Shown: positions 2,129-50,691 of the stretch, piece by piece | Numbering within the stretch: position 1 is the stretch's first letter | Layout: every line of letters starts with the position of its first letter | From: Selaginella moellendorffii | Lineage: Eukaryota > Plantae > Lycopodiophyta | DNA: 64,000 bases | Assembly (NCBI RefSeq): GCF_000143415.4 | Contig: NW_003314306.1 | Coordinates: 463,698-527,697 of the forward strand | Reading direction: 5' to 3' | Notes under the pieces: generated by a model | Told to the model about the DNA's origin: nothing | What the model saw: only the letters and a program-made list of their open reading frames with translations | Database searches by the model: none | Position numbers and translations under genes: made by a program

Positions 2129-3977
2129 CTATAGCCTGGAGACATTAACTTTGATACCATTCACCATTGCTAACACCATGAGCAGCCTGTAGTGGACAAC
2201 GTGATCCTTCACTAGCTCAAAGTTAAAGAACCTCATGAGCATCGCGGCAGTGATCTTGGCCTGCAAGTAAGCGGCATCCTTTCCCAAGCAAATTCTCGGC
2301 CCGGCCTGGTAGAGTTTTCAAGTTTTAGCCGTGATGAACTAGAGATAAAGAGAGATCTCTCATACCTGGAATGCGGTGTAGACGAATGGTGATTGAGGCT
2401 GGTATTCGGAGTTTTTAATCCACCTCTCCGGCTTAAACTCTAGAGCGTCAGGTCCCCACAGAAACTCCATTCTTCCCATGGAGTATTGCACGTAAGCCAC
2501 AGAATCCCCACGTTTAACTTTAGTCCCGTCCGGAAGAACATCATCGTTGGCTGCATACTTTCCATCCTGGAGAAAGCTCAAGTTAGTCAGCTTTTTACTG
2601 GTGTAAAGAAAGCTTGGTGGGACTTACTCGTGGTACCGGCGGGTATAAACGAAGAGTCTCGCTGATGCACGCGTGCAAGTAGTGAAGCGTGCGAAGATTC
2701 TCAGTGGAGAGGAGCTGTGCGAAGGCACTGAAAGTCAGTGTGTTGCTCTCACTCCCAAAGGTCCGGTCTAACTCGAGGCGAATCTCTTTGGCCACTCGAG
2801 GATTGTTGCAAATGCAGTAGATAAACCAGGACAAAGTGATGGCCGTCGTGTCTCGTCCAGCAATTATGAAGTTGAGGATGGCGTCACGAAGCTCTCTGTC
2901 TTGATACGCATCGCTTGCTCCAGTGGAAGTCATGAATCGGGACAAGAGGTCCTGCCTTTCCTGGAAGACAAAACTGTAAGAAAAAGTCGTATTTGGGAGG
3001 AAAAAACTTACGTATTCCTTGCCAGATTTCTCGCAGGCTTCAATCTCTCGTCGTCGGTTTTCGATCACCTGGAACGTGAATGAGTCCAGTACCTGGATCT
3101 GGTTCTTTAGCTCCCGCTCAGAGCCCAGGTTGAGAGCTCGTAGGATTTTCCACACTGGCCCGATTAAGCGACGCACGATCAGCTCGTTAACTCGGTCAAA
3201 AGAAGCTGCGAAGGGAACTGCTGGTAAGGAAGGTGACAGAGTGTTTAGTTCCACTCCAAACGCAACCTCGCAGATAGAATCTAATGTCATTCGCATGGAT
3301 ATGTCCTGCCAAAGAAAAAAAATATTTCGAGCTTGAGATTGAAATGCTATTTCTCTCATAGACCATACCTGGAAGTCGAAAGAGGTTTTCGTGCTTGCAA
3401 TATTTTCCAACACTTCCATCATTCTCACAGCAGCCTTCTTGAAAACTTGGCCACTGTACTCGTTCACCTTCTTGGACGAAAATTCGTAGCTTGCAAGTTT
3501 GCGGTGCCGTTTCCACATCTCCCCGTCCGAATTGAAGATTCCATCTCCCATAAAGTCGTAGTTCCTGGCGCGCGAGACACGTCCCTACTCACCATACCGC
3601 AAGTAAGAACTTGAATCAGTAAAAACGAATCATACCTTGGGATAGTTAGCAAAATTTGTCTTGAGAATGTGCTCGACGTTGGCAGGGTCGATCGTGAGAA
3701 TGTTGTAGAAGGTCCCCCAGTCCACTGCAATCGTCCTACACTCGCTGCTGAAATAGCTAAGGAACCAGTCGTGAAGCACTGGGAAGTTCTTCACGACTTG
3801 GAAGTAAGAACCGACCAGAGGCCATCTCTTTGGTCCCTTGTGATTTCTTTTCTCCGCAGAAAGAAGCACCGCGAGGAAGACCGCAGCAGCAATTCCTGTG
3901 ATGAAAACCAGAGGATTTGGATAGGAAAGACCTTCGAAAACGCCGCTGATGTTACGAACTTTGTCGGTGGAGTTCAT
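2129..3977 (-). CDS. CYP704: Cytochrome P450, CYP86 clan, CYP704-like fatty acid omega-hydroxylase
   Basis: N-terminal TM anchor, [38 protein letters not shown]-helix [20 protein letters not shown] and heme motif [10 protein letters not shown]. Stop at 2129-2131. Confidence 0.9.
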
Positions 3978-6495: not shown

Positions 6496-6806
6496 TCATC
6501 ATCGCGATCCCGCCAAGACCATATGCCCAAGAACCCTAAAATTTGCCCAGCAGCCCTAATTTCTCGTGACAATCGCCAAAATTATTTGGGCGGCGCTGGA
6601 TATTTGCTTCCTACATTTAGGAATAAAACCAAAGGGTACGGCTTTCCCTAGCCCGACGGAGCTTATTTACCAGCGATCGTGGCCGTCAATGCGGTGGTAG
6701 ATGGTAAATTCTCCATCTCTCGACCACGTGGAGCACACAAGCCGTGGCAAATTGACTCTAGGGTTTATAGATCGACCGCTCGGATCGTTCTAGGGCCGCG
6801 CATTCT

Positions 6807-9800
6807 ATGCTCGCAGCTGCTTGGAATCTCTGTCTGGCAGCTCCAATCGTCCGGAAAGGTCATCTCTCGCAATAGCAACCTCGCGATATCGATTTCAATG
6901 CAGATTCAGGCCTTTCGCCTCCCCGGCTGAGCTGCTTCCATCGCGTCCGATCCGTGCACTTCCGCGCCTCGATCGCTTTGCGGCAGCGACAGGAGATCGC
7001 AATGGGTGAGCGCGATGTCTGGAAATTTCTCCTCTGACGCGAAATTTGGCAGTGTCGGGGCATCCATTCGAGAGTATTCTCACTTCCTTGTCCAAGGACG
7101 ACGGTGGGGAGTATGGGAAATATTACAGCCTTCCAGACTTGCATGATCCACGAATTGGTATGCTGGTGTTCTCTCTTGATTTGATCTGTCTCAAATTTTC
7201 TCTCTTTTTCGTTCGATTGCACAGAGAAGCTGCCTTACTCGATCAAGATTTTGCTGGAATCGGCCATTCGAAACTGTGACAACTTCCAGGTTACAAAGGA
7301 CGATGTAGAGAAAATTGCCGACTGGGTTAACACTGCTCCAAAACTAGTGGAAATTCCTTTCAAGCCTGCTCGAGTTATCCTCCAGGTTTGGAAGCTAAGA
7401 ATCAAACAATTGTGATGTGACTTGTTCCAACTCTTGTGTATTTGTTTTTTTCTTTTTCCTTCAGGATTTCACTGGTGTACCAGCTCTGGTGGATCTAGCT
7501 GCAATGCGGGATGCTATGAAGAGGCTCGGTGGCGATCCCACAAAAATCAATCCTTTGGTAAAACCTTTGTTCTTTCTTCTCATGAGGAAAGTATTTTAAA
7601 TCTTGGTTCTTGCTTTTAGATACCTGTCGACCTCGTGATTGATCACTCCGTACAAGTCGATGTCGCTCGCTCGGCTAATGCTGTCGCGAGCAACATGCAG
7701 TTTGAGTTTAATCGCAACAAGGAAAGGTTTGCGTTTCTGAAGTGGGGATCAGTTGCCTTCAAAAACATGCTGGTGGTTCCTCCTGGTTCTGGTATTGTCC
7801 ATCAGGTATGAGCCCAGTTTTTAAATCTGGAAGTTTACATTTGTCATTATTGTCAGGTGAATCTGGAGTATCTCGCTCGAGTAGTGTTCAACAGAGATGG
7901 CTTTCTTTATCCGGATAGCTTGGTTGGTACTGATTCGCACACCACCATGATAGACGGACTTGGAGTTGCCGGATGGGGAGTTGGAGGAATCGAAGCGGAG
8001 GCAACAATGCTTGGACAGGTATTTTGATTCAGGATTTTGCAACATCTATCCGGATTTTTCAAATTCATCCATTTTTGTTACAGCCAATGAGCATGGTTCT
8101 TCCGGAAGTCGTGGGGTTTAAGCTAGTAGGCAAACTTCAGGCTGGAGTCACTGCAACAGATCTGGTCCTTACTGTAACGCAAATGTTGAGGAAACATGGT
8201 GTGGTTGGGAAGTTTGTCGAGTTTTACGGTCTGTATCTACTTGAGTTTTATACTCCTAACGTTTTCCTTTTATTTCAGGCGAGGGTGTCAGCTGCCTTTC
8301 ACTAGCTGACCGAGCAACTATTGCTAACATGTCACCGGAATATGGTGCTACTATGGGATTTTTCCCTGTCGATCAGATGACCTTAAATTATTTAAGCTTG
8401 ACAGGCCGTGATGCAGAGAAGGTAACTTTATACATTTCTAAAATAAAACCTTATGATTTAGTATAATAATACAGGTGAAAATGGTCGAAGCTTATTTGCG
8501 TGCAAATGATATGTTTGTGGACTATTCTCAGGTAACAAGATACTATAGAAATTTGCCTAACAGTTTTTTATTATTCGCGTAGAAACAACCTGAGACGGTC
8601 TATTCAGCATATCTAGAGCTCGATTTGGGAAGCGTTGAACCCTGCATTTCTGGACCTAAACGGTTAGCTTTTGTCGATTTTTGATGGCTCGCTCCTTCTC
8701 TAACATCCAACTTTTCTGTTAGTCCGCATGATCGGGTTTCTCTTAAGGACATGAAGGCTGATTGGCAGGCCTGCCTAGACAATAAAGTTGGCTTCAAAGG
8801 CTTTAACATTCCGAAGGATCTTCAGCACAAGACCGCTCAATTTACATACGAAGGGAAGCCGGCAGAGCTAAGACATGGGGATGTCGTCATTGCAGCGATT
8901 ACAAGCTGCACGAATACATCCAATCCCTACGTGATGCTTGGAGCTGGACTAGTTGCCAAGAAGGCAACGGAACTGGGACTCGAGGTATGCCATCAATATG
9001 TTCTCTAGATGGTTAACTTAGTTTTATAAGCAGGTTCGTCCCTGGATAAAAACAAGTCTTGCTCCTGGTTCAGGCGTTGTTACGAAGTACCTTATAAAAA
9101 GGTAATTGTTTCATTGCCGCATGCCTGTATTCTGAACCACATGTAAGTACTGCAGTGGTCTTTTGAAGTACCTTGATATGCAAGGATTTAGTGTTGTGGG
9201 ATATGGGTGCACTACCTGCATTGGAAACTCTGGCGAGCTGCATGAGGCTGTGGCTACAGCGATAGCGGATAATGGTACGTAGCTCTCTGCATTTCCTCTT
9301 GTTACTTACTGTCCTCTGTCAACAGATATTGTTGCTGCAGCGGTCTTATCGGGAAATAGGAATTTCGAAGGACGGGTGCATCCCTTAACGCGGGCCAACT
9401 ATTTGGCTTCTCCTCCTCTGGTTGTAGCTTATGCATTAGCAGGAACGGTAAGCCTTTGTTTTCAGCACAACCGTGTTTTTATGATTTTCTTTGCAGGTAA
9501 ACATCGACTTTGAGAAGGAACCCATCGGTGTTGGCCACTCTGGGAAACAAGTTTTCTTGAGAGACATTTGGCCAACGTCGGAAGAAGTCGCAAAAGTATG
9601 TATTGTGAATCACTTTCATCTGTTTTCTTAAAACTCGTTCACTTCCAGGTTGCAGAAGCTTCTGTGTTGCCCGAAATGTTCAAGTCTACATACGAATCCA
9701 TCACGAAGGGCAATACTATGTGGAATGACTTGCCTGCTCCTACTGGAGATCTCTACTCATGGGATCCTAAATCAACGTACATTCACGAGCCGCCATTTTT

Positions 9801-10727
9801 CAAGACCATGACTCGAGATCCACCCGGTGTTCATGGCGTTCACGACGCAGCCGTTTTGCTAAATCTCGGGGACAGTATCACTACCGATCATATTTCACCA
9901 GCCGGGAGCATCCACAAAGACAGTCCGGCTGCCAGATATTTGATGGAAAGAGGCGTCGAGAGGAAAGACTTCAACTCTTACGGCAGCCGACGTGGAAATG
10001 ACGAGGTTATGGTTCGTGGAACGTTCGCAAACATCAGAATTGTGAATAAGCTGCTCAAAGGTGAAGTGGGACCAAAAACCGTCCATCTTCCTTCTGGGGA
10101 ATGTCACTGGGTTTTCGATGTGGCGCAGGTATTTCTTCTATTTCATGTCTTTAAGAGAACTGAGGTTTCCTTTGCAGAAATATAAAGACGAAGGAAAGGA
10201 GATGGTGGTTCTTGCCGGAGCAGAATATGGCAGTGGCAGTTCACGAGATTGGGCAGCCAAAGGGCCCTTCCTTCAGGTTAGACCAATTAAGTTTTCAAGC
10301 TAAAGTCATGATAAAGTCATGAATCGCTTTGTTGGCAGGGAGTGAAAGCTGTCATCTCTAAGAGTTTCGAGAGAATTCACCGGAGCAACCTTGTTGGAAT
10401 GAGCATCATCCCTCTGTGCTACAAGAATGGCGAAGACGCAGAATCGCTTGGTCTTACTGGACATGAAACCTTCACCATCGAGCTGCCATCCACGATCGAG
10501 GAGATCAAGCCCGGGCAGGACGTGCTTGTGAAGACCAACACGGGGAAGGAGTTTACTTGCACACTTCGCTTTGATACGGAGGTATGAAAACTTTTCTTTT
10601 TTTTCTTTTTGCTAGTGGAGTTTTGATCTTTGGCTTTACACTTGGCTATGCACAGGTTGAGAAGACTTACTTTAATCACGGTGGAATCTTGCACTATGTG
10701 TTGCGGCAGCTACTTGGCAGTGCTTAG
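6807..10727 (+). CDS. ACO: Aconitate hydratase (aconitase), multi-exon
   Basis: SGHPFESIL..., [119 protein letters not shown]. The upstream ATG at 6807 is in frame after a 45-nt intron; a second ATG lies at 7002. Confidence 0.97.
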
Positions 10728-10806
10728 ACTAAAGGACTCTTTTGTGAATTTGGAATAACGTGCTTTTATTTCTCAAACAAATCTAAGTGTAGTAACATCC
10801 TTGCTC

Positions 10807-13800
10807 TCATGCTTGCAGCTCCTTGGCCAGCTCCTTTTTTAGTCTCAGCCTCTTCTTCTTGGAAGGCTTTGTGGACAACGCTGCCACAATGCTCTTCAAG
10901 GCCGACGCGATGCTGATGCTTGCCGGTGGTGGCGAGCTCTCTTGTTTAGTTTCTGCTGCTGGAGGGGTCGTAAGATCATCGATGTCTATCGCCTTCGTGG
11001 CTACTCCAGGTTCTTCTCCTTCGCTGATTACTGCTGGTTTTTCGGTTTTGCTAGCGGCTTTTGGATCCTCTTGTAGCAGCGGACTCTCTTCCTCGCTGGT
11101 GGGAGTCGTTTCCTCGACTTGCTCTTTGTCTTCCTTCTGAGCGTCTGCTAGCTCGTCTTCGACAGTGATGGGAGCTGCGTCATCTGGAGCAGTGATAGCT
11201 TTGTCTTTGGCTGGTGTGAAATCTTCTGGTACTCTTTCAGCTTCTTTCTCTTTCTCTTCCTCTTGAGTTCCTTCGTCTTTGGCAGTGATGGGAGCTGCTT
11301 CGTCTGGAACAATGAGATCTTTGTCTTCGCCTGGTGTGGAAACTTCTGGTACTGCTTTCTCTTTGTCTTCCTCCTGAGTTTCTGCGAGCTGAGTTCCATC
11401 GTCTTCGGCAGTAATGAGAGCTGCTTCGTCTAGAGCAATGTCGCCTTTGTCTTCGGCTGGTGTTGTTGCTTCTTCCTTGTCGTTCTCGTGGACGATGCTT
11501 GTTGTTTCGAGCTCCTTAGCCTTCTGATCCTCGCGATTCTCTGCTGGATGAGTTCCTTCACCAGCAGCTACCGCCGCTTCTTTCTCTTCGTCCGCAGATA
11601 CTATTGTTTCTTCAACTGTTGCTTCTTCATCTTTGCCCGCTTCTTGGTCCGGAAAGGTGACATCTGCGTCGTGAAATTCTTCCTTGTCCGGACTTATACC
11701 TTCTGCTACTTGAGTTTCGTCGTGCACCTCCTCCTTGTCCGGAATTGTATCTCCTGCTACTTGAGTTTCGTTGTGCACCTCTTCCATGTCCGGAATAAGA
11801 GTTTCCTTGTGCACCTCGTCCTTGTCCAGAATTATATCTTCGGCTACTTGAGTTTCGTCGTGCACCTCTTCCTTGTCCGGAATTATATCTTCGGCTACTT
11901 GAGCTTCATCGTGGATCTCTTCTCTGTCTGGAATTATGTCTTCTGCTGTCTGAGTGCTCGTGGAAAGAGCATCCGTTTGGAGAACTGTTGTTTCTTTCTC
12001 TTTCTCTCCGCTTGGATCTTGATCTTCTGCTACTTGAAATCTTTCCTCGCGTTTGTCAGTTGCTTCCATCTCCGAGTTTTCTGCGATCTTAGCCTGAGTT
12101 TCTTCACTGCTCACTGTTTCTTGCACCTTTTCTTCGTCGTCGCCAGCAGCTGGAACATTCCTGTCCACGGCTTCGTCTTTCAAAGGTTCGTGTTCAATCA
12201 GATTTGTTGACTCCTCGGTGTCTCTAATATCTTGCTCGCCTTCTTCAGTCCGACCTTCCACTGGATTTTGGATTGCTTCGTCACCACCTTCGACTGCCTT
12301 GTCCTCCCTGGCTTCGATAGCTCCCTCGACATCTTGGACTGTCGACGGCAAGTCTTCTCCCCCTTTATCATCAGCTTCACTTTGCAGCGTAATCTCCTCG
12401 TGTGGTTTCTCTCCGACTTCTTCAGCAGCTGTGTTCTCAATTCCATCTTGAAGCTCAAGTCCTCTGTCAGCCTCATCTGTCTTTAATAGCCCTTGACTTT
12501 CCAAAACCAGTTCGCCAGCAGACGCTTGATCGTTTCTAGTCGTCTCTTTGCCATCTGCGTCTATTGCTGCTTGATCCTCAGCTCCATCCAACTGTTCTCC
12601 TGCTTGCTTAGTGACCACACTTTCATCTGTTGCTGGTTCAACTTCCACAGCACTGCCTTCGTCTGTATCCTTACTTTCCTGGATGCTATGGTCTTCGGTA
12701 ACTCCAGAGTCCTCCAGCTTCTCAATTTGTGCATCTCTGCCTTCGTCAGCCTCAACTTTGGATTTGGCGTCATCGTCCAAAGTTGTCCCGCTTTCTTCTG
12801 TTGTCATCGTTGGTAGTTCGTCTTCGGTTCTCTTGTCAGCAACGGTATCTTTTGTTTCTTCCGATGATCCGGCAGCTAGTTCGTCGCCCTCGATTTTGTC
12901 TAGAGGTACTGCATCTTCAACGTTGGAACTTTCGACTTCCTGATCAGCCTTGTCTTCGGTTGGTGTCCCGTCAACTTGGTCTTGTCCGTGCAATGTGGTC
13001 TCATTCTCTGCTTCGTGGACTTGCTCAGCCTCGCGTGGTGTTTCTTCAGCCGCTTCTTTCTTGTCTTGAGCATCAGACTCTGGTGCAGCAGATACTTGAT
13101 CAGTTCCATGATCCTCGCCTGCGTCTACTTCGTGATCTCCACTGCTCGTCTTTTCTTCGACACTTTTGCTTCCAGATTCCTCTGCGGCGTCTATCTCCAC
13201 CATCGGTTCTGTTGCTAGTTGTTCCTCACTAACAGTTGCGCTTCCGTCTGGAACAGCTTCCTCGAGTATCCCAGATTTGTCAGCCAGCTCTTCTTTGGCT
13301 TGCACTTTACTTTCTGGATCTTCTGCCACATCGACCAGCTCATCAGCTCGTTCTTCCGTCCCTGTTGTTGATTCCACTGCAGCTTCATCCTCTTTTTCCA
13401 CTTCCCTGTTGTCAGCCATTTGCGATGATGTTCCCTGCTCCTCACCAGGCTTTTCGTTTCCTAGCGACGCAGCATCTGCTTCGTCCGATGCTGCACTCAA
13501 TGCTTGATCTGGGATCTCCTTAGTGACACTCTCTGGTGTTGTTGCAACGTCCTCATTGTGTCTACTGTCAACGGCTGCTGCTGCACCAGTAATCTCCGAC
13601 CCTGCTTCCTCAATTCTCGCGTTTTCATCGACCTTCTCTTTGCTTTCCCCAACTTTATCCTCGCTCTGCGCATCATCGATTTCCTGAGCCTCTGCTGGCT
13701 TTTCGGGATTATTGAGATCTCCAGCCTTCTCATCTTTCTCTTCGATTGTGGTGTTCTTCAAGGGCCTGCTTTCCAGTTGTTCAGAGTCTGCTACTGGTGC

Positions 13801-16800
13801 TTCGTTGTCTGCGTTTCCTGCTGCTTCGACCCTGTCTTCCAGCTGAAGCTCCTCCACTTGTGATTCTTCGTCGCTATTCAGCTCACTGTTTATTACGAGG
13901 TCCCGTGACTCCACCTCAAGTTGTTCTGCTGCTGGCTCTTCACGGTCCTTGGTTTCCTGCTTCTCTAATATCATTTCCGACGTAGATTCATCCGTGTCTG
14001 CTTCATTTGTTGCCGTCGCAGGGACTAGTTCAATCTCCCTTGCTACTTCTGGTGTTTCTGCAGTAGTTTCCATCTGGTCAGGCACTGTGTTTCCAGTCAC
14101 GCCTTCATCATTCGCTGACTCGACGGCTTCAATCTGCTCCATCACCTTAGAAGCGTCCTCGCTCGGTACCGTTTCCTCGATTTTCGCTTCATCGGCTGCT
14201 ACTTCCTTTTCCTCGGGAACTACTCCAATCACCTTAGTCGTCTCGGCCTCCATTTTCATTTCATCGTCCAATGCTTCCTTTTCCTCAGTGCTGGCGACGT
14301 CCTCCTCGATTTGATTACTCGTCTCTAAAGCAGCTGCTGTCTCCTTGATCTTCACGTCATTGTCTGCTGTTCCCTGAATCTTCTCCATCGGTGCTTCTAG
14401 AGAAGTTTCCACCTGGCCTGTTGCTTCCATTTTTACTACAACATCGGCTGTCTCGTCCTCGTTTGTGGCAGCTGCTATTTCTGAGAGATCTTCTACCTGG
14501 CTAGGCACTGTTTCCTCGACCTTCTCTTCATCTGCCGTCTCAGAAGTTGATATACACTCTGTGGCCGCTTCCACAGGATCGAGTGGTTTCTCCTCGTTTG
14601 GGATCGTTTTCTCAACTGGACTCGCATCAGTTTGTTCCTGCTGGACGGTCATTGATTCCTCCTCTGATTGTTGTTCCTCAGCATTCAATGATGTCTCTTC
14701 GAGGCTTGGTGATGGCTCGACTTCGACAGGGCTTCGTTCCGTAGTCTCTACTTCAGCGGGTTCTTCTGTAGTAAGTGGCTCGCTTGCTGCTTCTCCGGTT
14801 CCAGCTTCTTCCGATCCAGCTTCCACTTTTGTAGCCTGCTCCAACGGGTTGATATCAGCTTCGGGAGTTTGAACTGGCGCTCCGATTGTTGTAAGTTCTT
14901 CTGGGGCTATAGGTTGTTCGTCAACTTTTGCCTCCTCAGGGTCAGCGGGCGTTGCTTCTTTTTCCTTCGCTGGAACATCTTCTTCTGCTGTTGGATTCTC
15001 CACCTCGGTCGGTTTTGGTTCTTCCTCCACAGGTGCGTTTACTTCCTCCGTTGACTTGTCAACTGGCGTTGTTTGATCCACACTTTGTTCTGGTGTACTC
15101 TCTGCTGGTGCTTGCATAAGATCGGCTGCTTTCTCGGCCTCGTCTGGCGTTGCTTCCTCGACTGGATTCTCATCAGCTTGTCTTGGCTCTACGGCCGGCG
15201 ATATTTCACTGTCTTCCAGCGTGGTTTCAATCCTCTCTGCCTCGGCATTCAGTGAAGTCTCTTCGAGGCTTGGTTGTGGCTCGGTTTCGGCAGGAATTGG
15301 TTCGAGTTCCACGGTTTCGACCTTGGTGGTATCACCTGTGACGAGTGGCTCGGTTTCGGCAGGAATTGGTTCGGGTTCAACGGTTTCAGCCTTGGCGGGA
15401 TCACCTGAGATGAGTGGCTTGGTTTCAGCAGGGATTGGTTCGGGTTCCACGGTTTCAACCTTGGCGGGATCACCTGTGATGAGTGGCTCGCTTTCAGGGA
15501 TTGCGCTGTCTCCGTTTCCACCTTCTTCCGATCTGGCTACTTCCAGTGTTGGTGCTTCAACAAGTTCCTCCAGCGGCTTGATGTCAGCTTCGGGAGTTTC
15601 CACTGGCGCTCCGATGCTTGTAATAGAATTTAACTCGTCTATCAACGCAGCGTCTGTGCTGTCGCCAGCCTCTGGAAATATAACTTGTTCGTCGACTTTT
15701 TCCTCCTCTGTAGAAGCTGGTTGTTCTTCGGTGCTTGGTGTTTCGGTCAACTCTTCCCTGGGAGGTTTGGAAGTCTCGGCTGTTGTCTCATCCACATTTT
15801 GATGAGTGGCTTCTGCAGATGTCTCCACAGGTTCAACAACTTTCTCTTCCGGAGCTTCAACAAGCTCCTCCTCAGCTCGTTCTTCTGGAAAAGTTGTAGC
15901 AGCTTCTTCATCCCCGCCCGTTGCTACAGCTGGTTTGTGTGTTTCAAGAGCTATTTCCTGCTCCATCACTTCAACTGGCTCGTCCATAGCTGTTTCGTTC
16001 GGTTGAGACGGTTCTTGTGTCTCTACAGAAGTATCCAGCTCGCCAGCCACTGTCTCTTCAGCTTTTACATCGTTTGTTGTTTCCGGAATCTCCTCCACCA
16101 CCTTTGGTGCCTTTACTGTTTCTGAGAAAGTGTTTTCCTGGCCAGCCACTGTTTCCTCTTCATCAACCAGCTCCTTATTTTCTGTCACTGTTTCGCCAAG
16201 CACAGTATTTCCTTCGTGATCGGCTGCAACTTCATCCACCACCAGTGTTTCTATAGAAGTCTCCAAGTCACTAGGCATTGTTTCCTTAGTACTATTTTCA
16301 TGATCGGCTGCTTCCATCTCCTTTGGTGTTTCTAAAGATGCTTGCACGTCAGTTTCCTCGACCTGTTCTTTACTATCGGATGTTGTTTCCTTCTCGTCAG
16401 CGATGGCAGTCTGATCAGACACTGTTTCCTTAACTCCATCGTCCACTGGTTCCGTTTCCTCCGTGCCTGCAACGACTGCTGGTGTCTCAACACTCGTTCC
16501 TGTACCATCCTCTGTTTTCTTTTCCTCGTTGCTAGCGTCGTTTTCATGCGGAGTAACTTCTTCAGAAACTGTTTCTAAAGAAGTTTCTACCGCGTCCGAG
16601 AGTGTTTTGTCATTCGTTTCGTCATTATTCCCTTGTTCCTTCTCAGTGTTCCTGGCTCCACTTTCCTCCATCGCTTCCACCTTAACATCTTCATCAGGAA
16701 CAGTAAGCTCGCGTTCCCCATCAGGCAAGCTTTGACGCTCAATATCCTCTGTTATTTCAGCTACCGTATCCACGATGTCATCTCCTGCTGTGCCTTCAGT

Positions 16801-17956
16801 CGCTGAATCTTCTTGGCCATGATCTCCAGAGTTTCTTGCTGCATCAACAGTTACTGCTTCTTCAACCATGTCCGACTTTTCTTGCAAATCACTTCCGTCG
16901 CTTGTCGCTGGAATCGAGGCCAAAGTATCAACATCAGCTGCTGCTCCAACTTCTTCTTTCGCACTCGAGTTCTCCGGATTACCTCCCACTTCCAATGACG
17001 ATGTCCCTTCGGCTACTGTTTCATTCTCATGTTGACTACTCTGTTCCTCGATCTGATGTTCCAAATGACTTCCAGGGGACTTCTCTTCGTCAGGGATCTG
17101 GGCATCACTTTCTGCACGAGGTGCTGCTTGTTCGCTTGTTCCAACTTCGATGCCACCTTTTCCACTATCGTGAAAACTTTCATCAGAAGTGTTCCTGTTC
17201 TCAGATTCCCCGACGACTGATCCGCTTTCCTCTTCAGTTTTCGCTGAATTATCAACCTCGGCCAGACTTGGTTCGTCTAACTTGAGTTGATCCTTGCTTT
17301 GCTGTGGATCTGTTTCTTCCAGTGACTCTTGTCCACTCCCATTTTTCGTTACCTCTGCTACTCGATCCTCGGCTTCTAGCTTACTTCCAAGAGTCTGATC
17401 TTCGAGAAGAACCTTACCATCAAGATCTTCGCTTGCTACGTCCGTTTGTGAACTTGCCTTGTCTTCGTCGACACGATCTTTCACAACCTCTTGTACCCCG
17501 TGCTCGACTGGAGCAGGTTCCTCGACTGGGTTCATCTCAGCTCCTTCTCCGTCATCTTTACTTGCAATTAACGCTTGACCACCATTTTCTTCGACTTTAT
17601 CCACAAGTTTCTTCTCGTCCAGAGGTTCCACTAAAACAGCCGCCGGATTCTCTTCCTCAGACTTACCATCTTCGACAGGCTTTGATTCTTTTTCTCCAGA
17701 TCTAACGCTTAAGTCCTTTTTACTCTGATCACTGTCTACTCCACTCTTCTCCTTATCCAAAAAACTAACGCCGCTCAAAGAACTATTCTCACTCTTGCTT
17801 TCTAAAGCTAAGCCTTCGATGGCGATGCTCTCTTCGGCAGCCTACGAGAAGAATGCGATAGAAAAATCAAAATCTTGCCACTAAAATCTTATGCTAAAGA
17901 TCTCTAAGCCATACCTGGATCGCGTCGCTATTTACTTCCGCATCATCTAGGCCCAT
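10807..17956 (-). CDS. Giant acidic (Glu-rich) low-complexity protein A, ~2,358 aa, with basic C-terminal tail
   Basis: Exon 1 is 17956-17915 (MGLDDAEVNSDAIQ), followed by a GT-AG intron. Exon 2 (17841-10807) is a single open frame of ~7 kb with internal 17-aa and 20-aa repeats. Confidence 0.85.
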
Positions 17957-18712
17957 GGCAGAGGTATTCGATCAAAAACAGCACCACGGATCGATCGATC
18001 CTCCAATGAAAGAACAGATTCCGCCTCTGCTCCAAAAATCAAGCCCGGGATCGCAAAGATCGAACCGAAACTCGATCGATCGCTCGCCAGGCGCCAAGGA
18101 AAACCTATCTAGATCCACTGAGAAGAAATAATCGCCCTAAAATCTCATCATATATCCACATACACCGCCAACGTCTTGTCTCCTACAATATTCCTTCCAG
18201 AAAGGAATCGGATCAAAAAAATTGGGCGGGAAAATGCTTGCGTGTCAGGTCCACATGGCCCAGCATCTATCCACATCACCTTTCTTTTTGGTCGGCACCG
18301 TCCAAACTGTCCTCCACCCTGGCATGGGCCACACAGAGCTAGCTGTCCAGTCATTCTTTTCTCTTTTTTCCTGGCCACTAGGTGGAGAAGTTTAAATGGA
18401 GGATGATGTGGGCAATCCAAAAGGTGGCAAAGATTGGAATCCAAATTCTAAAAGATATTCACACCGACATAAAGCTGTCCAAGCTGACAATGATCTTTAG
18501 AATAGTTCTTTGGTTGCATGCAAGCTAGCATTTATATTCCTTCCCACCACATCGGCGAGAATAATATACAGAGCTTATCAACCAAACACAATTTTCTTTA
18601 TACTATATAACTGTATGTACAGAGCTTCTTATCCAAACCATGAGCTCTCCGTAGAGAGAGCTGTTTCGCGTTTTTCAGTTATTTCATATTGGCTCTGTGT
18701 TTTGTCATGCGA

Positions 18713-21700
18713 TCAACTGCTTGCTTCTACTTTTGCTGTTTCATCTGATAGTTTTGTTTCCGAGGTTGTTTCGTGATGGGCTGGTTCAACAAAGTCAACG
18801 GGCTTGTCTTCCTGAGATTCTTTCGTAGTTTCAGTTTCGGTTTTGCTTTCACGTTCGGTTTCGGTTTCAGGTTCTGCTGGCATCTCATCCTCGTGCGTCT
18901 CATGGTTTGCTTCCTCTGCAATTGACTTTGGGTTTGACGTCAGCTCTTCCACTTTTTCAGGGTCAGCAGCCGTTGACATTGTACTCTCTTCTTCTTTCTT
19001 GGTAGGAACGTCTTCTGCTACTGCTGCTGAATTCTCCACCTCGGTCGCTTGTGGTTCATCGTCCAAACTTGGTGCGTTTACTTCCTCCGTTGACTTCTCG
19101 CCAAGGTCAACTAGTGTTGTTTGATCCACACTTTGTTCTGGTGTACTTTGTTCTAGTGTAGTATCTGCTGGTGCATTCTCAACCTCATCTGGCGCTGTTT
19201 CCACGACTGGATTCTCGTCAGCTTGTCCCGGCTCTAGGGCCGCTAGTACTTCGTTGTCTTTCGGAGTGGTTTCAATCTGCTCTGGCTCCTCAACTGGTTC
19301 GTGTTCCGCGGCATTCAGTGGAGTCTCCTCGAGGCTTGGTGCTGTCTCGGTTTCGCCAGGGATTGGTTCGGGTTCCACGGTTTCAACCTTGGCGGGATCA
19401 CCTGTGATGAGTGGCTGGCTTTCCGGCATTGCACGGTCTCCGGTTCCAGCTTCTTCAGATCCGGCTACTTCCAGGCTTGGTGCATCAAGTTCTTCCAGTG
19501 GCTTGATGTCAGCTTCGGGAGTTTCCGCTGGGTCTTCCACCGCCGCTTCAATGTTTGTAGTAGGATTTGATTCTTCTATTGATGCAGCGTCTGTGCTCTC
19601 GCCACCTTCTGGGAATATAACTTGTTCGCCAACTTTTTCCTCCTCTACCGAAGCTGGTTGTTCTTCTGTGCTTGGTGTTTCAATAGACTCTTCCGTGGGA
19701 GATTTGGAACTCTCGGCTGTTGTTTCATCCACATTTTGATGCGACACTTCCTTGGGTTCTCCAGGCGTCTCCACAACTCCAGCAGCATTCTCTTCTGCAG
19801 TTCCAACGAGCTTCTCCTCAGCTGGTTCATGTGGAGGAATTGTAACAGCTTGTTCTGGCTCTTGTATCTCTAGAGCTCTTTCCTCCTCCTGTGCTTCAGC
19901 AGGCTTGTCCATTTCAGTAGCTGGTTTGTTCAGACCAGTCGTTTGATCAGCCAGTTCCTGTGTGTCGTCCTCTACGTGTTTCTCTGCAGGCTCCTCCATT
20001 GGTTCATCTGCTTGAGCTGCTGCCTCTGTTTCAAGAGTTTTGTCATCTTCCGTCGTGGCAGCCGGTTCCTTTGCTTCCAGTTCCTGTGTTTCATTGTTGG
20101 TTGTCTCGTGCTTTTCCGGAATCTCCTGTTTTAGTTCGTCCGGCTTCGTAGTTTGGACTGCTTCTTGTGTCACAGGAGTTCCTTCAGAAGGCTCCACCAT
20201 TGCAGGAACTGGCTCATCCACACTGGTTAATTCTGCAGCTGGTTCATCCAAACTAGTTCTTTCAGCTTGCTCCTGTGTCTCACTGGCTGGTTCGTCTACT
20301 TGTTTTTCAGGAACCTCCACTGGATCATCCATCACGACCGCTGGATCGAGCTCGTCCTTGCTCGTTACTGGTTCCTGTGTTTCAAGAGCTCTTTCGTCTG
20401 CTTCTTGTTCCCCGGGCTCTTCCACAGTCACAGCTGGTTGTGGTTCCTCACTTGGTGTTTGAGCAACTGTTTCCTCTTCAGCCTGTTTCAGAACTTCAAC
20501 AGGCTCATTAGCTGGTTCATCCACAGCTGGCGTCTCAAGAAGTGGCTCTTCTGAAGCTGTGTCTTCAGCAGGTTCCTCTAACTTAGCAGCTGCTTCCTCC
20601 TCGCTTGTCGTTTGAACCGTTTCAGGAACTGCTTGTTGTTCTGGAAGTTCGCCTGGCTCATTTGGAGTAGGAGCTGGTTCATCCGCAACTGGCTGGTGAA
20701 CTTCAACAGGCTCCTCCACGGAAGATGGTTCTTTCTCACTCGTTTGATCCTTTGCATGTTGCTCTGGAACTTCGACTGGTTCAGCATCTAGAGTAGAAGC
20801 TGGTTGATCCACAACCGGCTCATCCGCCACCACAGATGATGGTTCCTTCTCACTCGTCGTTTCATCCTCTGCAAGTTGCTCCAAAACTTCAACTGGCTCA
20901 ACATCTAGATGCGAAGCTGGTTGATCCACAACCGGCTCGTCTGCCACCACAGAAGATGGTTCCTTCTCACTCGTCGTCTCAACAGTCTGGTCCTCTGCAT
21001 GTTGTTCTTGAACTTCAACTGGCTCAGCATCTAGAGTAGAAGCCGGTTGATCCACAACTGGCTCGTCTGCCACCACAGAAGATGGTTCCTTCTCACTTGT
21101 CGTTTCATCCTTTGCAAGTTGTTCCGGAACTTCGACTGGCTCAGCATCTAGATGTGAAGCTGGTTGATCCACAACTGGCTCGTCGGCCACCACAGAAGAT
21201 GGTTCCTTCTCACTTGTTTCAACAGTCGAAGATGGTTCCTTCTCACTTGTCGTTTCATCCTTTGCAAGTTGTTCTGGAACTTCGACCGGCTCAGCATCTG
21301 GTTGATCCACAACTGGCTCGTCCGCCACCACAGAAGATGATTCCTTCTCACTCGCAACGGTCTCGTCCTCTGCAAGTTGTTCCGGAACTTCGACTGGAAC
21401 TTCAACTGGCTTTGCATCTAGAGTAGAAGCTGGTTGATCCACAACTGGCTCGTCCGAAGCTGTGACTTCAACGGGTTCCACCACCAAAGAAGATGGTTCC
21501 TTCTCACTCGTTGTTTCAATAGTCTCATCCTCTGCATGTTCTTCTGGAACTTCGACTGGCTCTGGATCTGGTTGATTCACAACTGACTCATCCGAAGCTG
21601 TAACTTCCACCGGTTCCAATGGTTCCTTCGTAGTTTCATCCTCTGCATGTTGCTCTGGAACTTCGACTGCCTCACCTAGAGCAGAAGCTGGTTCATCCAC

Positions 21701-24700
21701 AACTTGCTCGTCGGCCATAGAAGGTGGTTCCTTCTCACGAGTCGTTTGAACAGTCTCATCCTCTGCATGTTGTTTTGGAAGTTCGACTGGCTCAGCATCT
21801 AGCGTAGAAGCTGGTTGATCCAGAACTGCGTCCGAAGCTGTGACTTCAGCAGGTTCCTCCACCACCAATGGTTCCCTCTTGCTCGTGGTCTCATCCTCTG
21901 CATGTTGCTCTGGAACTTCGACTGCCTCACCTAGAGCAGAAGCTGGTTCATCCACAACTGGCTCGTCCAAAGCTGTGGCTTCCTCCGCCATAGAAGATGG
22001 TTCTTTCTCACTAGTCTCATCCTTTGCATGTTGTTCCGGGACTTCGACTGGCATAGCAGCTTGTTCATCCACGGGGGATGTCTCAACGGGCTCCTCCAAA
22101 GTTTCGACTTCGGCAGGCTCCTCCTCACGTGTTGCTTGAACTGTTTCCGTCACCAGTTCTTCTGGATGTTGTCCTGGAACTTCAACAGGTTCATCTTGAG
22201 TAGGAGCTGGTTCGTCCACGACGGGTGACTTTACTGGCTCTTCAGGAGCCTCCTCCAACTTAGCTGATGGTTCCTCCTTGCTCGTGGTTGGAGCTATTTC
22301 ATCCTCTAAATGCTGTTCCGGAACTTTGACAGGATATGAAGCTTCAACTTCAGCAGGCTCCTCCACATTAGCAGATGGTTCCTCCTCGCTCGTCGTTGGA
22401 ACTGTTTCAACCCCCGGTTCCTTCAAATCTTGTTCTGGAACTTCGACAGGTTCATCTCGAGTAGGAGCTGGTTCATCCACGACAGGTGCCTCCGCTGGCT
22501 CTTCCAAAGCTTCACCTTCCTCCAGCTTAGCAGTTGATGGTTCCTCAGTCACGAGTTCCTTCAAATTTTGTTCTAAAACTTCAGCAGGCTCGTGAGCTGG
22601 TTCGTCCACGGGGGATGTCTCCACCGGCTCTTGCGAAGCTTCACCATCAGCAGGTTCCTTCAACTTACCCTCGGCTGGATCCTCCACAGTCGTTGTCTCT
22701 GGCGTCCCAAGAGCTGGTTTTTCAGCCTCGGCTGGTTCCTCCACAGTCGTCGTCTCTGGCGTCCCAAGAGCTCGTTCTTCAACCTCGGCTGGTTCCTCCA
22801 CAGTCGTCGTCTCTGGCGGCTCAAGAGCTCGTTCTTCAACCTCGGCTGGTTCCTCCGCAGTCGTCGTCTTTGGCGTCCCAAGAGCTGGTTGTTCAACCTC
22901 GGCTGTTTCCATAGTTGGTTCTTGTTCTTCCGTTTTTGCTTCAACAGTTTCCTCTAAAGCTGGCTCAGAGGCTGCTGCTTCCTCTTTACCAATAGCGTCA
23001 TCCGTAGTTGACGTAGTAGTATCCAGCTTATCCTCGGCCGGTTTCTCCGTCTCTGGCGTCCCATCTTCAACCTCGGCTGGTTCCATCGTCCCGATGGTTA
23101 GTTCTTGCAGATCACGATCCGTTGATGCTGGTTCTTCTGCTTTTCCTTCAACAGGTTCCTCCAAAGCTGGCTCAGATATTGTTGCGTCCTCTTTACCAAT
23201 AGCGTCATCCATAGTCTCCAACTCATCCTCGGCTGGTTCTTCCACTGTCGTCCCAAGAGCTGGTTCTTCAACCTCGGGCGGTTTCTCCGTCTCTGGCGTC
23301 TCATCTTCAACCTCGGCTGGTTCCATTGTCCCGATGGTTGGTTCTTGCAGATCACGATCAGTTGATGCTGGTTCTTCTGATTTTCCTTCAACAGGTTCCT
23401 CCAAACCTGGCTCAGATGCTGTTGCATCCTCTTTACCAATAGCGTCATCCATAGTCTCCAACTCATCCTCGGCTGGTTCTTCCACTGTCGTTGTCTCTGG
23501 CGTCCCAAGAGCTGGTTCTTCAACCTCGGCTGGTTCCATTGTCTCGATGGTTGGTTCTTGCAGATCACGATCAGTTGATGCTGGTTCTTCAGCCAAAGTC
23601 ACTGGTTGATCAGTGCTCTCTTCAACCACGCTAGGAGGCTCAGCTTTGGCTTCAAGAACTTGATACTCAGGTTCTTCCGCAGCTTCAACTTGAGGCTCAT
23701 CTGCTAGTGATTTCGTTCGTTCAGTTTCTTCACCAGTTTCTTCCTGCGTCTCGGCAGTTGGCGCTGCTTCAACACTTGTTTCAACTCCCGTGTCCTCTTT
23801 CCTGTCAAGTTCAGCCCCAGCCTTCTCATCTGAAACAGCTTCCACGGTTGGAGCAGCGTCGTCAACTGTTGCATCGGGTGAAACTTCAGTTTCGACGTCA
23901 GGAGCGGAGCTCGTAACCTCGGAGTTCTCCGTGATATCAGGTGCCGTTGTCGCAGGAATATTAAAAGTTTCCGGTGCAACTTCTCTAGACTCTTCGTTTG
24001 GTTCGAGAGTATCCTCTTCCTTGACCTCCAAAGTATCAGGTCCTTGAGCTCCAGCCGTTTCTGGAGGAGGCTCGACGCCTCCTTCTTCACTTAGCACAGC
24101 CTCTTCAGACGGTGTAGCGTCAAGAGCCACTGTCGTGTCTTCTAACGCAGAACTTTCCTCACTCTCAACAGGCTGAGTAGTAGAAGCAGCCGCTTTAGCA
24201 CCTGTTTCCTCCGGCAAGCTCACTGGAGCTGCTTCTTCTTTCGCAGCACCGGCACTGTCCAAATTGGTTTCCTCGCTCACAGGTTCTTCACGATCCTTTG
24301 ACTCAACCTCAATCTTGCTATCTTCAACCTGTGGCGTCTCTTCTTCAGTTGGAATTTCTTCCGTTTTTTCTTCCATTGGCGGCACAATTTCGGCCTGAGC
24401 AGCACTCTCGCTGTCCACTTTTTCCTCAACTTGAGGAGGAGCTTCGTCCATTTGCAGTTCTTTGTCACCGCTAGACACATTGTCGGTTTCATGCATGGTT
24501 TCTGGTGTAGCAGCCTCGAACTCTTCGGCTTGAGTAGGAACTTCTTCCGTTTTCCCTTGATTATCTTTGCTTTCAGGCACTTTGTCGACTGTCTCTGCCG
24601 CCAGAGTTTCCTCCGCTTTCGGTTCGGTTTCTTCGACCTCGGCCTCGATGTGGGTTTCCGGCATCTGTTCGGGTTGATCGACATCTTCAGCTTTAACTTC

Positions 24701-26101
24701 ACTTTCTCCACTTTCTGCTACATTCTCGCGCTTGGCTTCCGTTGTCTCTGGAGCAGTAGCTACATGGTCTTCAGGCTCGTCAACATTTCCTTCCACTGTC
24801 CCTCCGGTTTCGATGTTCTGTGGTACTTTTTCGTCCGCAGCAGCAGCCTTGCCTTCAACTCCCACCGTCGAATCTACGGGAGCTTCATCCGAAGGTAATG
24901 ATTCGGGTACTTCCTTCTCCTCTGATGGTTTATCTGTCAAGTCTTCTAACTCCGACCTGGCTTGAGGAACGTTTTCTTTGTCCATGACATCGGGTGAAAC
25001 GCCGCCACCTTGAAGAGCGGCTTCTTTGGCATCGATCTCCGCCGCTGGACTAAGTTGGTCGTCGATACCTCGATCACTGACGGCTTCCTTGTTTTCATCC
25101 GTAGTTTCGTGTTTTCTAGTATCCTGTCCAGTATCTTCAGTAGCTTTGGTGTCTTCTGTCATAACTGGCGAGTCATCAGACGTTGGAGCCTCAGGCGGAA
25201 CATCTTTCAGAGCCTCGGAGACAACAGCGGGAGAATCAATTGCCATCGCTTCAGATAGTGGACTTTGATCGTGTTTGGGATCATTGCTTGAATCATCGGT
25301 GCTCAAGGGCGCGTCAGCCGCTGGAACTTTAGAAAAGCTCTCCGGGGGAAGTACCACTTGTTGGGGTAAATCATGAAAGACTTCCTGACCTTGAGGACTT
25401 TCGGGTTCCTGGAAACTCTAAACAGCTCAAGAAAAGGCATGCGATATTGGAGAACATCATCTTACCGCTTCAACTCTAGACATTCCAACTGGAGACTCCT
25501 CAGCTTTTCCAGGAATCTCACGCTGTTGGGTGATATGGTCAGCAATTAATACTTCGCAGCTCTATGGACAAGAGTACCTCTTTATTGATATCGTTCTCAG
25601 GCTTATAGAAATCCTCCACGACGGTCTTGAGTCCTCCCAGATATCTTGCTGCACGAGAAAATCCCAGTAGAGTTGGATAAGATCAAACAAGAAACTCGGT
25701 TGTTTACCTTTACCTTCACTGCTACTCTCTCCATTGGAAGACAAGGGAAGTGAAGATCTCTCTGACGAATCTGGCGATCGACGAGATGGACTCGACTTCA
25801 CAGGCATCGAAAACCCGTCTAGTTGCTGGACAAGATCATGAAAAACCTCCTCCTCTTGGCCCTCCTCTTCGTGCTCATCCATTCCTTTGATTTCCTCCTT
25901 CTGGATGGTCTCAAAGTCATCTTTTGGTTCGTCGTGGATTAACTTCTTGCCAGTCTCCTGCAAGATCAGATCCAAAACAAATGAGAAATCCAGACCACCA
26001 CGATAGATCGAAGTTACTTTGATCTTTGTGGCGACTTTGGAGGCCGCCTTGGACGTTCTGTGGTGGCCGTCATCCTTCTCTTTGCGTTGAGCGTTTCCCA
26101 T
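18713..26101 (-). CDS. Giant acidic Glu/Pro-rich repeat protein B, ~2,380 aa, N-terminus MGNAQRK
   Basis: Four short 5' exons (26101-26018, 25957-25708, ~25649-25578, ~25523-25467) splice into a ~6.7 kb last exon. That exon has many EEPAEVE and ADEPVVDQPAS..EPVEVPEQ repeats. Confidence 0.85.
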
Positions 26102-27023
26102 GATGAATCAGAAGAACACACAACTATGTAAAACAATGATAGTAGAAATCTCTCGCTGCTCCTCCGTGCAAGGGGCTTGCTTCGTGCAAGCTTCTAAGAA
26201 AAACCGGAGCAAGGGAACAAAAACGCGAATGAAATCCAAGCTTGCGATCAAAAAACAGTGCAAGTATGAATCACGGTCTCTAAAATCCCTGTCGAGAAAG
26301 AGGAAAAGAATCTATATACACGAGCACGCACACCGATCTCTACGAAACCAGCAAAATTTACACAAGAAAGCGCTGAATGCCGGATTCTAGCACGAAAAAA
26401 TCACTCCAGATTCACAAAATTACGCCAGCGCCAGGATCTAAGCCCCTCCCTCTCGCCACAACTTTCCTCTTCGATGGCGCCACGATAAACCCTACAGTGA
26501 AAAAACTGTGAAGGCCGGACCAATGCCAGCTATGAGCGGCGATCGTGGCCGTCCATCTGAGAACGATCCAGGCCGTTCACTGACATTGTAAAGAGAAAAT
26601 ATTCTTCCTTCCCCACAAGAATGACTTTCAAGGAGATCACGTAGTTGGCTTGGATCTTTTTAGAATTAAACAAAGTGATTATCCTAAAAATCGCTTTGCT
26701 GGAATGAGTAGAGAATAAAATTTATTCGATGGCCTTTGCTGGAAAGAAGCAATGCGAGAAAAAAAAACAATAGAAAGTCGGTCTCTAAAAAACAAGCTTT
26801 TCTTGTCTCTTTGCCTCCACAGTGCGTCAACGAAGAACTTCAAACCGGGAGAGATCTGGGAGCTCTACCTTTTGGAAGAACAATTTGGACGGAGAGAGAT
26901 CTCGCGGCGGATCAATAGAAACTTCAAAAACTTGAGTGTGTTCTTGGTGTGTCTCGCGGGAAACGAATCTCCGGCTCTTAAGACGTAACCATAGCCATTT
27001 TAGATAAGCACCTAGCGAAACAT

Positions 27024-44628: not shown

Positions 44629-46352
44629 CTATGGCTGCTTTACTCTCACTCTCCTTCCAGTACCGTCGGTTCCATCCGCCAAGTGTGTCCATACGGACCT
44701 TCGTTTAGATCCGGGCCTTAGTTCGTCGTCGTCGCCTCCTTCCACTCCAGCCACCGTTCTTAGCAATTCCGATTGCAATGACGGGCAGCTCTCCTTCAAG
44801 TAGTCGAAGCCATCGCTTTGGATCACGGCTAGAAAGACGAAACGAAAAGAAACTTCAGTCGAAGAAGAGAAACAAAATGGAGATATCAAACCTGCCAAGT
44901 TGGAAGCGGCAAACTTGAGGCAAACTCTCTTGAGTTGCGTCGCATGGTGCTGCTCCGCTAGAGCTAGTGTCGTCGCCACTGTGTCTATGCTCACGTCCTC
45001 GCAGAGCTTTGCCTCGCAAACTATCCTCAGCCGGTCCAGTCCATAGCGATCAGCCGCGGCGAGCAAATGTTGAGCCATCATCGTGGAGGCCAAAGATGTT
45101 GACGAGTAAGAGCTCGAGGACAGCACCTCACTCGCATCTGGAAGCGCATCCCTGTATATAAAGTAAAGCATTGCCTGGAGAAACAAAAACGCTGTCAATC
45201 AGTTCGAGGCTTAGAATCGCTTACATACCTCGAAAACCGGAGCCTTGATATCTTCCAGTTGTAACAACTTAACGTTGGAGTCACTGAGAGGCCCGTTGAG
45301 TTGCGCTCGAAAAACGGGAGATCGAGCCGCCAGGACCATCTTGTGCGCGTGGAACACCTCTCCGTCCACCTCAAAAGTAATGTCCGATCCCTCTCCAGAC
45401 TCCAAAAGTGCTCCAAAGTGGCGGCCAATGTCCGACTCTGGCACTGGCAGACTTTGCTGACGCAAAGCCTGCATTGACGAGACAACCACGCCAACAGTGC
45501 AGGTGATGGAAAGGCTATCATCTTTCAGATAATCCGAGGTCTCTAGCACCGCGCGGCGAAAGAAACGTTTATAGCCCCTGTAAGTCGAGAAAGCTTGACT
45601 GAGTTAGAAATGTCGAGATGGGGATAAAAGAAAATTGAAAATCCTTGAGCTGGAATGCAAGAGAGTATATTTCATGCCGGCCTTGTCAAAGACGCTATCC
45701 ATTCCAACTTGGAGCTGGAAAATTCCCGTTGATCAATACGTGCTAAGCAAGTGACTAATGCACAGACCCCGAGGAAAACGCAAGCAGTCGTCTACTGAAA
45801 ACTCAAGTCACGCTACAATCGGCATAAAGTGCGCACAAAGCATAGAATCCAGACCCGACTGTCACAAGGAAGAAAACCAGCTAGCTAGCAAACCAAAGAT
45901 CACAAGGAAGAAAACCAAAGCAAAAGCGAAAGAATTACGTACCACATACTCCCTCGATACTTGAGAGTGTAAGGACCACTCTCAAGCGATCGATCAAAGT
46001 GGCTGTGAACCTTGTGCTTGTCTTTGCCACTCTGATCCAAGAGCGTCAGCTCAAACAGCGCTCTCACGTCCGTGCCTTCGCTCGCGAGAGCTATAAACAC
46101 CGAGACGTAGAGGGAGCTATCCTCCGTGTTCTTGCCGTCTGGATAGAAGTAGACCGCCCACTGGTAATTCCCCACCGAGAAGGTGTTGCTAGAGATGTAC
46201 TTGCCGACGCCCATCCCCTTGGCAAGGGAGTAGCCATTGATGGTGAAGTGATGCGAGCCATTCACAGTCTCGGTCACGGAGCGTGATCGCGAGGACGCGG
46301 CGATGGATGGATTGGCCGCGGCAGTGGCTCCCTCCTCCGGATCTCGTGCCAT
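44629..46352 (-). CDS. BPM: BTB/POZ and MATH domain protein (CUL3 adaptor)
   Basis: [29 protein letters not shown]...[14 protein letters not shown] (MATH); [15 protein letters not shown] (BTB); [11 protein letters not shown]...[12 protein letters not shown]. Confidence 0.96.
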
Positions 46353-50295: not shown

Positions 50296-50691
50296 TGTTG
50301 ACCATGACCCTGGGGGCATCCCCACACTTGGCAGTGCACCCAAGTTAGCCCTTCCGACCAAGGGTCCATAGCAACTAAGATTGAATGTCCCCATCTCATT
50401 CACCACGTCCTTGGTGCCACTTGCACCAAAGTTGTTCAAGTTAGATATATTGAGCTTTCACATTAAGCAATCTAGCCGTATTACGACTCCAGGGCATCCC
50501 CTATTTGGCGGTGTGCCCAAGCCAATCTCCTTACTGAGAGTCTATAACCACCAAAAAATGAATGTCCTTATATTCCAACCCATCACTATGCCCTAGTGCA
50601 TTAGGACTTGAACCCAAGCACTAAAGGGTTGGGACTCAAACCCAACCTCCATATATGCATTTATAGACGGCATCACCCAAGATGCCTAGCA
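50296..50691 (-). mobile_element. Putative LTR of the minus-strand gypsy-like element
   Basis: On the minus strand a PPT-like GGGGGAG precedes TG..., a TATA (TCTATAAAT) follows, and the segment ends ...CAACA. Confidence 0.4.

Follow-up and report, generated by a model that had tools for sequence, protein, structure and literature searches.

What might a pair of giant, Glu-rich proteins, encoded side by side in the genome of the lycophyte Selaginella moellendorffii, be doing? The question is raised by a 64,000-nucleotide (nt) stretch of contig NW_003314306.1 (assembly GCF_000143415.4, positions 463,698 to 527,697), which we call the window and number from its first letter. Two genes, A and B, lie there in tandem on the minus strand. 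An earlier reading of the bare sequence (the original prediction) took their products for candidate long tethers of the endoplasmic reticulum (ER), in which FFAT-like motifs (a pair of phenylalanines within an acidic tract) would bind VAP27 and the termini would bind another membrane. The explanation that we favour, tentatively, is that A and B encode species-restricted polyanionic disordered chains, each docked by one basic end and each bearing a constrained peptide, E-x-F-H-D, for a partner. The gene pair is uncharacterised, fast-evolving and species-restricted, and the specific VAP27-tether model failed the sole quantitative test applied to it.

Gene A opens at the ATG 17954-17956 with a 14-codon exon that reads MGLDDAEVNSDAIQ, followed by a 73-nt GT-AG intron and a single 7,035-nt exon that ends at the TGA 10807-10809 (Table 1). 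Protein A has 2,358 residues and, like protein B, begins with Met-Gly (MGLDDAE); its NCBI allele, named 'titin-like', is 2,369 residues long, 93-95% identical to A and has the same N- and C-termini. Gene B starts at the ATG 26099-26101 and encodes 2,385 residues in five exons separated by four GT-AG introns of 60, 59, 55 and 57 nt. Transcript contigs were examined over window positions 24000-26500 only, i.e., the 5′ part of gene B, where all four introns appear as joints (four runs from four studies) and the 5′ untranslated region (UTR) extends to at least 26472. Since the transcript-covered part of this UTR is free of upstream ATGs, MGNAQRK is the true start of B, as had been supposed. We note two insertions in this UTR relative to the window, each in contigs of two runs: 10 nt at 26394 and 1 nt at 26249; both probably come from the other haplotype. 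The alternative of one gene interrupted by an intron was weighed and discarded: the stop codon of B (18713-18715) is followed by ∼750 nt of non-coding DNA without an open frame before the ATG of A is reached, A opens with an ATG and a first intron of its own, and NCBI likewise models two genes.

The two products are acidic throughout most of their length. Protein A contains 20% Glu and 9% Asp (29.5% together; net charge about −511 for the largest exon), and protein B contains 23% Glu, 7% Asp and 11% Pro (29.8% Asp plus Glu; about −546 for the largest exon). Phe is scarce (9 in A, 10 in B), Trp is absent from both and Cys occurs at most once. On a charge-hydropathy plot both proteins fall deep in the disordered zone, and among 100-residue windows the tail of A alone lies on the ordered side. 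Searches and structure predictions were run on separate exons rather than on the joined spliced proteins. A Pfam scan of A and B gave no family above threshold, a PDB sequence search gave no relatives of either, and AlphaFold2, run on single sequences for two pieces, predicted no folded domain, with a predicted local distance difference test score (pLDDT) below 60 outside the terminal helices in the C-terminal piece of A. Hydropathy analysis of A and B revealed neither a signal peptide nor a transmembrane segment. The first part of the original prediction, two adjacent giant Glu-rich proteins without a folded domain, is thus borne out, as is the disorder that it implied. Tandem repeats fall into several families, with units of 17, 23 and ∼40 residues in A and of 19, 39/81 and 80 residues in B. 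One block of ∼300 residues is common to the two proteins at 70% amino-acid and 76-81% nucleotide identity (synonymous divergence, dS, 0.25; ratio of nonsynonymous to synonymous divergence, dN/dS, 0.65); outside it A and B are alike in composition only.

A second copy of the locus allowed us to ask how these chains evolve. The window is collinear with the S. moellendorffii scaffold GL377597.1 at 96-98% nucleotide identity with many small indels, and it therefore represents the second haplotype, or a different assembly, of that species. Comparison of the haplotypes gives allelic dN/dS values of 0.77 (A) and 0.56 (B), where the neighbouring pentatricopeptide repeat (PPR) gene has 0.20, and it reveals nine in-frame indel events in A (53 residues) and six in B (67 residues) with no frame break in either. 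The copy number of the B repeats is also unequal (window 20700-23500 versus GL377597.1 4600-7400). Because the haplotypes differ in repeat copies and indels, both proteins are length-polymorphic within the species. The bodies of A and B drift almost neutrally; their exact sequence matters little.

Against this background one short peptide stands out. F-H-D occurs four times among the 19 Phe residues where composition predicts 0.024 occurrences (Poisson P ∼1e-8), and none of 3,000 shuffles exceeded two, the four sites being partly dependent on one another: A2 is a V-to-F variant of the EEVHDE repeat unit, and a single 11-mer is present twice, as B1 and as B2. The recurrence of F-H-D amid few aromatic residues was part of the original prediction and holds, as do the sites themselves at the positions given, and the acidic 17-residue repeats placed before A2 proved to be an array of which A2 is the last unit. 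All four motifs have Glu two positions before the Phe, giving the consensus E-x-F-H-D. The B1/B2 11-mer, G-Q-E-V-F-H-D-L-x-Q-Q, has accumulated six synonymous codon differences and one amino-acid replacement; the retention of the peptide through six synonymous changes, when the background dN/dS is ∼0.6, argues for selection on the peptide. The E-x-F-H-D short linear motif is genuine and under constraint. Its surroundings are disordered, with the exception of B1, which AlphaFold2 predicts to be helical (pLDDT 74-85). A literature search for the peptide strings returned nothing relevant.

The second distinctive feature of the chains is the placement of positive charge. Across ∼4,700 residues, net-positive 20-residue windows occur only in B exon 1, in the Ser/Arg portion of B exon 2 and in the final ∼40 residues of A. 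The tail of A reaches a charge of +8 per 20 residues and is the sole positive stretch of that protein; in the AlphaFold2 model of the final 200 residues, a disordered part gives way to two helices (pLDDT above 90). Helix 1 is amphipathic, with a hydrophobic moment of 0.45 that only 0.5% of shuffles match, and the second helix is not significant in this respect. The tail had been described as amphipathic and polybasic, which it is, and as ending in RLRLKK, which it does not: the chain continues with ELAKELQA to the stop codon. A transmembrane tail anchor was rejected, as the maximal 19-residue hydropathy is 1.27 in the A tail, with Lys inside the segment, and 0.67 in B exon 5, where a hydrophobic segment of ∼19 residues with a Kyte-Doolittle mean of ∼1.6 or more is the criterion. 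At the other extreme of the pair, the amino acids of B exon 1 are the same in both haplotypes. We also note a non-acidic stretch, RYLGGLKTVVEDFYKPENDINKE, encoded by the 71-nt exon 3 of B (25578-25648), in which the haplotypes are 100% identical; two of the four Tyr residues of B lie there and the other two in exon 5. This stretch could be a further small functional module.

Taken as a working model, the explanation that we favour divides each protein into a bulk and a few small modules. The bulk, a run of ∼2,200 residues per chain built from Glu/Asp/Pro/Ala/Thr/Val repeats, probably works by its charge and length, not by its precise order of residues, and it could serve as an electrostatic or entropic spacer (a 'brush') and as a high-capacity binder of cations (Ca2+/Mg2+). 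Each chain would be docked by its single basic end on an anionic surface, of which the cytosolic side of a membrane is the likeliest; the candidate docking module of B is its N-terminal Met-Gly with the Lys/Arg-rich ∼30 residues, and that of A is the C-terminal amphipathic helix, Pro and polybasic helix. The two E-x-F-H-D copies in each protein would recruit a partner, for which VAP27 is one candidate. If the modules work as proposed, A and B would rank with the largest single-chain polyanions that a tiny terminal module anchors in any plant, and would offer a clean natural system in which to split function between bulk charge and length on the one hand and short motifs on the other.

Small acylated acidic proteins anchored by a basic patch (MARCKS, BASP1, PCaP1) are the closest working analogues of this arrangement. 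MARCKS/BASP1/GAP-43 and PCaP1/DREPP resemble B in placing Met-Gly and a basic stretch on a Glu/Ala/Pro-rich acidic disordered chain, the basic amphipathic effector-like segment of the MARCKS type resembles the tail of A, and PCaP1 is a Glu-rich Ca2+ binder. A and B differ from this group in being ten times longer, in having no sequence relation to it and in that their myristoylation is at most predicted, with B failing the PROSITE pattern; the Pfam scan of A and B at E up to 1 gave no match to the DREPP/PCaP1 family (PF05558). The PEVK segment of titin is likewise very long, Pro/Glu/Val-rich, repetitive and disordered, but A and B lack Ig, FN3 and kinase domains (Pfam, PDB), and B is almost without Lys, so that 'titin-like', the NCBI name, describes no more than composition. 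The acidic A-domain of Toc159 and other long acidic regions of plant proteins are also very acidic, fast-evolving, disordered and of variable length; those of the Toc159 type are joined to folded GTPase and membrane domains, whereas A and B hold nothing folded. On sequence grounds, nothing points to membership of A or B in any known family.

The search for relatives gave a similar picture. A word search with the whole of A matched solely the S. moellendorffii 'titin-like' allele, word searches with the C-terminal 280 residues of A and with B exon 5 gave nothing beyond the allele, and an exhaustive HMMER search with the first 1,200 residues of A against 1.84 billion representative proteins found no relative outside the species. 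Queries of ESM Atlas features with B exon 2 and the tail of A were blank. The libraries cover Selaginella incompletely, and other lycophytes may be missing as well. The NCBI product of B (2,318 residues; GL377597.1 2062-9244) is apparently absent from both large protein libraries: a word search with B itself did not return it, and the list from the exhaustive search with A lacks it, even though a local phmmer comparison of A with B, set to the same database size, yields 8.6e-58. A comparison of that strength going unlisted means that library coverage is incomplete and that blank Selaginella searches need caution. As far as the searches reach, the gene pair appears to be confined to S. moellendorffii.

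Several points weigh against the docked-chain explanation. A dN/dS of 0.56-0.77 is also expected of a dispensable gene, and no orthologues turned up in these protein-library searches. The comparison of alleles is weak: the motif Phe is identical across haplotypes in four of four cases and other Phe positions are polymorphic in 6 of 16, a pattern (P ∼0.16 for all four being kept at that rate of polymorphism) that is consistent with constraint and not significant. The N-terminus of B is a further difficulty. After removal of Met, the PROSITE myristoylation pattern PS00008 reads G-{EDRKHPFYW}-x(2)-[STAGCN]-{P}; the G-N-A-Q-R-K of B misfits it, with Arg at the small-residue position, and the G-L-D-D-A-E of A fits, which reverses the emphasis that had been laid on Gly2 of B, in a pattern so permissive that it proves nothing either way. 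Finally, the tail of A was proposed as a membrane anchor, and a basic amphipathic helix is indeed found there, but its KKKRLRLKK fits a classical nuclear localisation signal (NLS) equally well.

The first two of these points are shared by the view that A and B are fast-evolving orphans with little or no specific function, repeat-expanded reading frames that are transcribed and tolerated, disordered polyanions being harmless. High dN/dS, the many in-frame indels between haplotypes and the lack of relatives in any library searched are what such genes would show. We nevertheless consider this unlikely, as two frames of ∼7 kb have stayed intact in each paralogue and each haplotype, the dN/dS values do not reach 1, several independent transcript data sets contain spliced, assembled B, and E-x-F-H-D is constrained at the level of the peptide.

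The NLS-like tail of A leads to a nuclear alternative, in which the K-P-S-K-K-K-R-L-R-L-K-K of the A tail would be a classical NLS and the chains would be chaperones of, or counter-ions to, histones and other basic proteins. The K-K-K-R pattern lies inside the only basic stretch of A, and the predicted amphipathic helix of B1 within an acidic tract would be akin to an acidic activation or interaction element. Histone and basic-protein chaperones are typically extremely acidic, as are A and B. The C-terminus of B, however, has no NLS-like cluster, the basic stretch of B comes instead after Met-Gly, and an extended protein of ∼250 kDa is an unusual size for such chaperones. On this evidence a nuclear polyanion seems improbable to us.

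The ER tether of the original prediction, in which E-x-F-H-D would be an FFAT-like motif bound by the MSP domain of VAP27 and the basic or lipidated ends would bind the other membrane, could be examined by scoring. We implemented the scale of Mikitova and Levine (Table S2A, PMC3261905), which sums flank charge and positions 1-5 and 7, and our implementation matched seven of eight published scores. All four motifs have the FFAT core residues (position 2, Phe; position 4, Asp) and lie in disordered acidic surroundings. They count 4.5 (A2 and B1), 5.0 (A1) and 6.0 (B2) suboptimal elements, against a cut-off for detectable ER targeting of ∼2 (PMC3261905), and shuffled A and B typically hold a window that scores 3.5, so that the real motifs do no better than chance. 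On a later scale (0, perfect; 2.5, OK; 4, weak; 7, poor; PMC12411717) the four would rank weak to poor. Position 5 is Ala in A2 and Ser in A1, whereas B1 and B2 have Leu (penalty 1), a residue that no validated motif in the excerpts of the review table has there. In addition, FFAT peptides bind in an extended form, at odds with the helix predicted for B1.

There is nonetheless a plant precedent for an F-H-D core. The FFAT-like motif of Arabidopsis ORP2a/2b, S-F-H-D-T-x-E, scores 2.5; as a monomer it gave no ER targeting, as a tandem dimer it was targeted, and targeting was lost when positions 2-3 were changed to Ala-Ala (PMC3261905). In planta, VAP27-1 no longer co-immunoprecipitates with ORP2A once the FFAT-like motif of the latter is mutated (PMC9618059). 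These results place the F-H-D core in use by a plant VAP27 partner, and large acidic patches have been proposed to aid the binding of suboptimal motifs (PMC3261905). ORP2A/ORP2B resemble A and B in having an F-H-D core after an acidic tract (compare S-F-H-D-S in A1), a disordered region and more than one motif per protein, the second lying upstream in ORP2a/2b; two motifs per protein could provide avidity in A and B as well. The likeness has limits: ORP2A has a flank charge of 4.5 and the Selaginella motifs show weaker flanks (A1, A2, B2) or a position-5 Leu (B1, B2), and A and B are without an ORD or PH domain and without homology to the ORPs. That F-H-D is held in common with the VAP27-binding motif of ORP2A bears on how far FFAT-like motifs can degenerate in an acidic context.

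Geometry adds to the difficulty. Protein A carries modules near both ends, as a tether should, but in B both motifs lie within the first ∼170 residues, adjoining the Met-Gly basic end, which leaves the distal end of the ∼2,200-residue B chain without a second point of attachment, contrary to the two-ended tether that had been envisaged. A chain of ∼2,400 residues would moreover have a contour length of ∼0.9 μm, far beyond a contact gap of 10-30 nm. We regard a tether between ER and another membrane as doubtful. A variant retains VAP27: a weak, multivalent FFAT-like F-H-D would bring this lycophyte-specific, end-anchored pair of polyanions to VAP27, where they would set the spacing or ion milieu around ER-membrane contact zones in the role of electrostatic spacer or cation reservoir, the huge acidic body itself being the 'acidic tract' that enables a poor core motif to bind. 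We rate it as less probable again. Equally remote is the idea that the V-F-H-D-L peptides of B are ATG8-interacting motifs (LC3-interacting regions) and would link B to autophagic membranes or make it a cargo or receptor: B1 and B2 do fit [W/F/Y]-x-x-[L/I/V] after acidic residues (F-H-D-L, upstream Glu) and both keep the Leu through different codons (CTT and TTA), but the pattern is short and common, and A1 (F-H-D-S) and A2 (F-H-D-A) lack a hydrophobic fourth residue, so that ATG8 would not be a partner common to all four motifs.

Table 1. Features of the A/B locus, in window positions (TRF, tandem-repeat scan)
Feature	Position	Strand	Remarks
Gene A	10807-17956	−	exon 1 17915-17956, intron 17842-17914, exon 2 10807-17841 including TGA stop
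Gene B, coding region	18713-26101	−	exons 26018-26101, 25708-25957, 25578-25648, 25466-25522 and 18713-25408 including stop
Motif A1, DESFHDS	17164-17184	−	E-x-F-H-D; unchanged in other haplotype
Motif A2, DKEEFHDADV	11659-11688	−	last unit of 17-residue array, Phe for Val; kept in NCBI allele
Motif B1, GQEEEVFHDLVQQ (EEEVFHDL)	25823-25861	−	B exon 2; F-H-D codons 25835-25843; kept in other haplotype
Motif B2, GQEVFHDLPQQ	25358-25390	−	start of B exon 5; F-H-D codons 25370-25378
A C-terminal tail, 36 residues	10810-10917	−	helix IASALKSIVAALS 10873-10911, Pro, basic helix KKKRLRLKKELAKELQ 10813-10860
B exon 1, Met-Gly then Lys/Arg-rich stretch (MGNAQRKEKDDGHHRTSKAASKVATKIK)	26018-26101	−	sole basic stretch of B, together with the Ser/Arg portion of exon 2
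17-residue acidic repeat array, PDKEEVHDETQVAEDII type	11667-11947	−	gene A; 51-nt period, ∼5.5 units (TRF)
Block of A common with B (A exon 2 residues 645-962)	14955-15909	−	includes three 23-residue repeats at 15276-15495 (TRF)
B copy of shared block (exon 5 residues 1852-2140)	18988-19855	−	sequence comparison with A
B internal repeats	20716-23491	−	117/243-nt units 20716-21214; 57-nt units 22669-22910; 240-nt units 23032-23491
Aconitase, 949 residues	∼6800-10730	+	converges on 3′ end of gene A
PPR protein, 634 residues	4591-6495	−	beyond aconitase, seen from gene A
Dual-specificity phosphatase	2595-3551	−	beyond PPR gene

The neighbours in the window were named through collinearity with genes called on GL377597.1, where the pair is flanked by aconitase, the PPR protein and the dual-specificity phosphatase on one side and by a small unannotated gene on the other. 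Their identities suggest no functional link to A or B. Elsewhere in the window, the G+C content drops from ∼48% to 29-40% over the final 18 kb (46000-64000).

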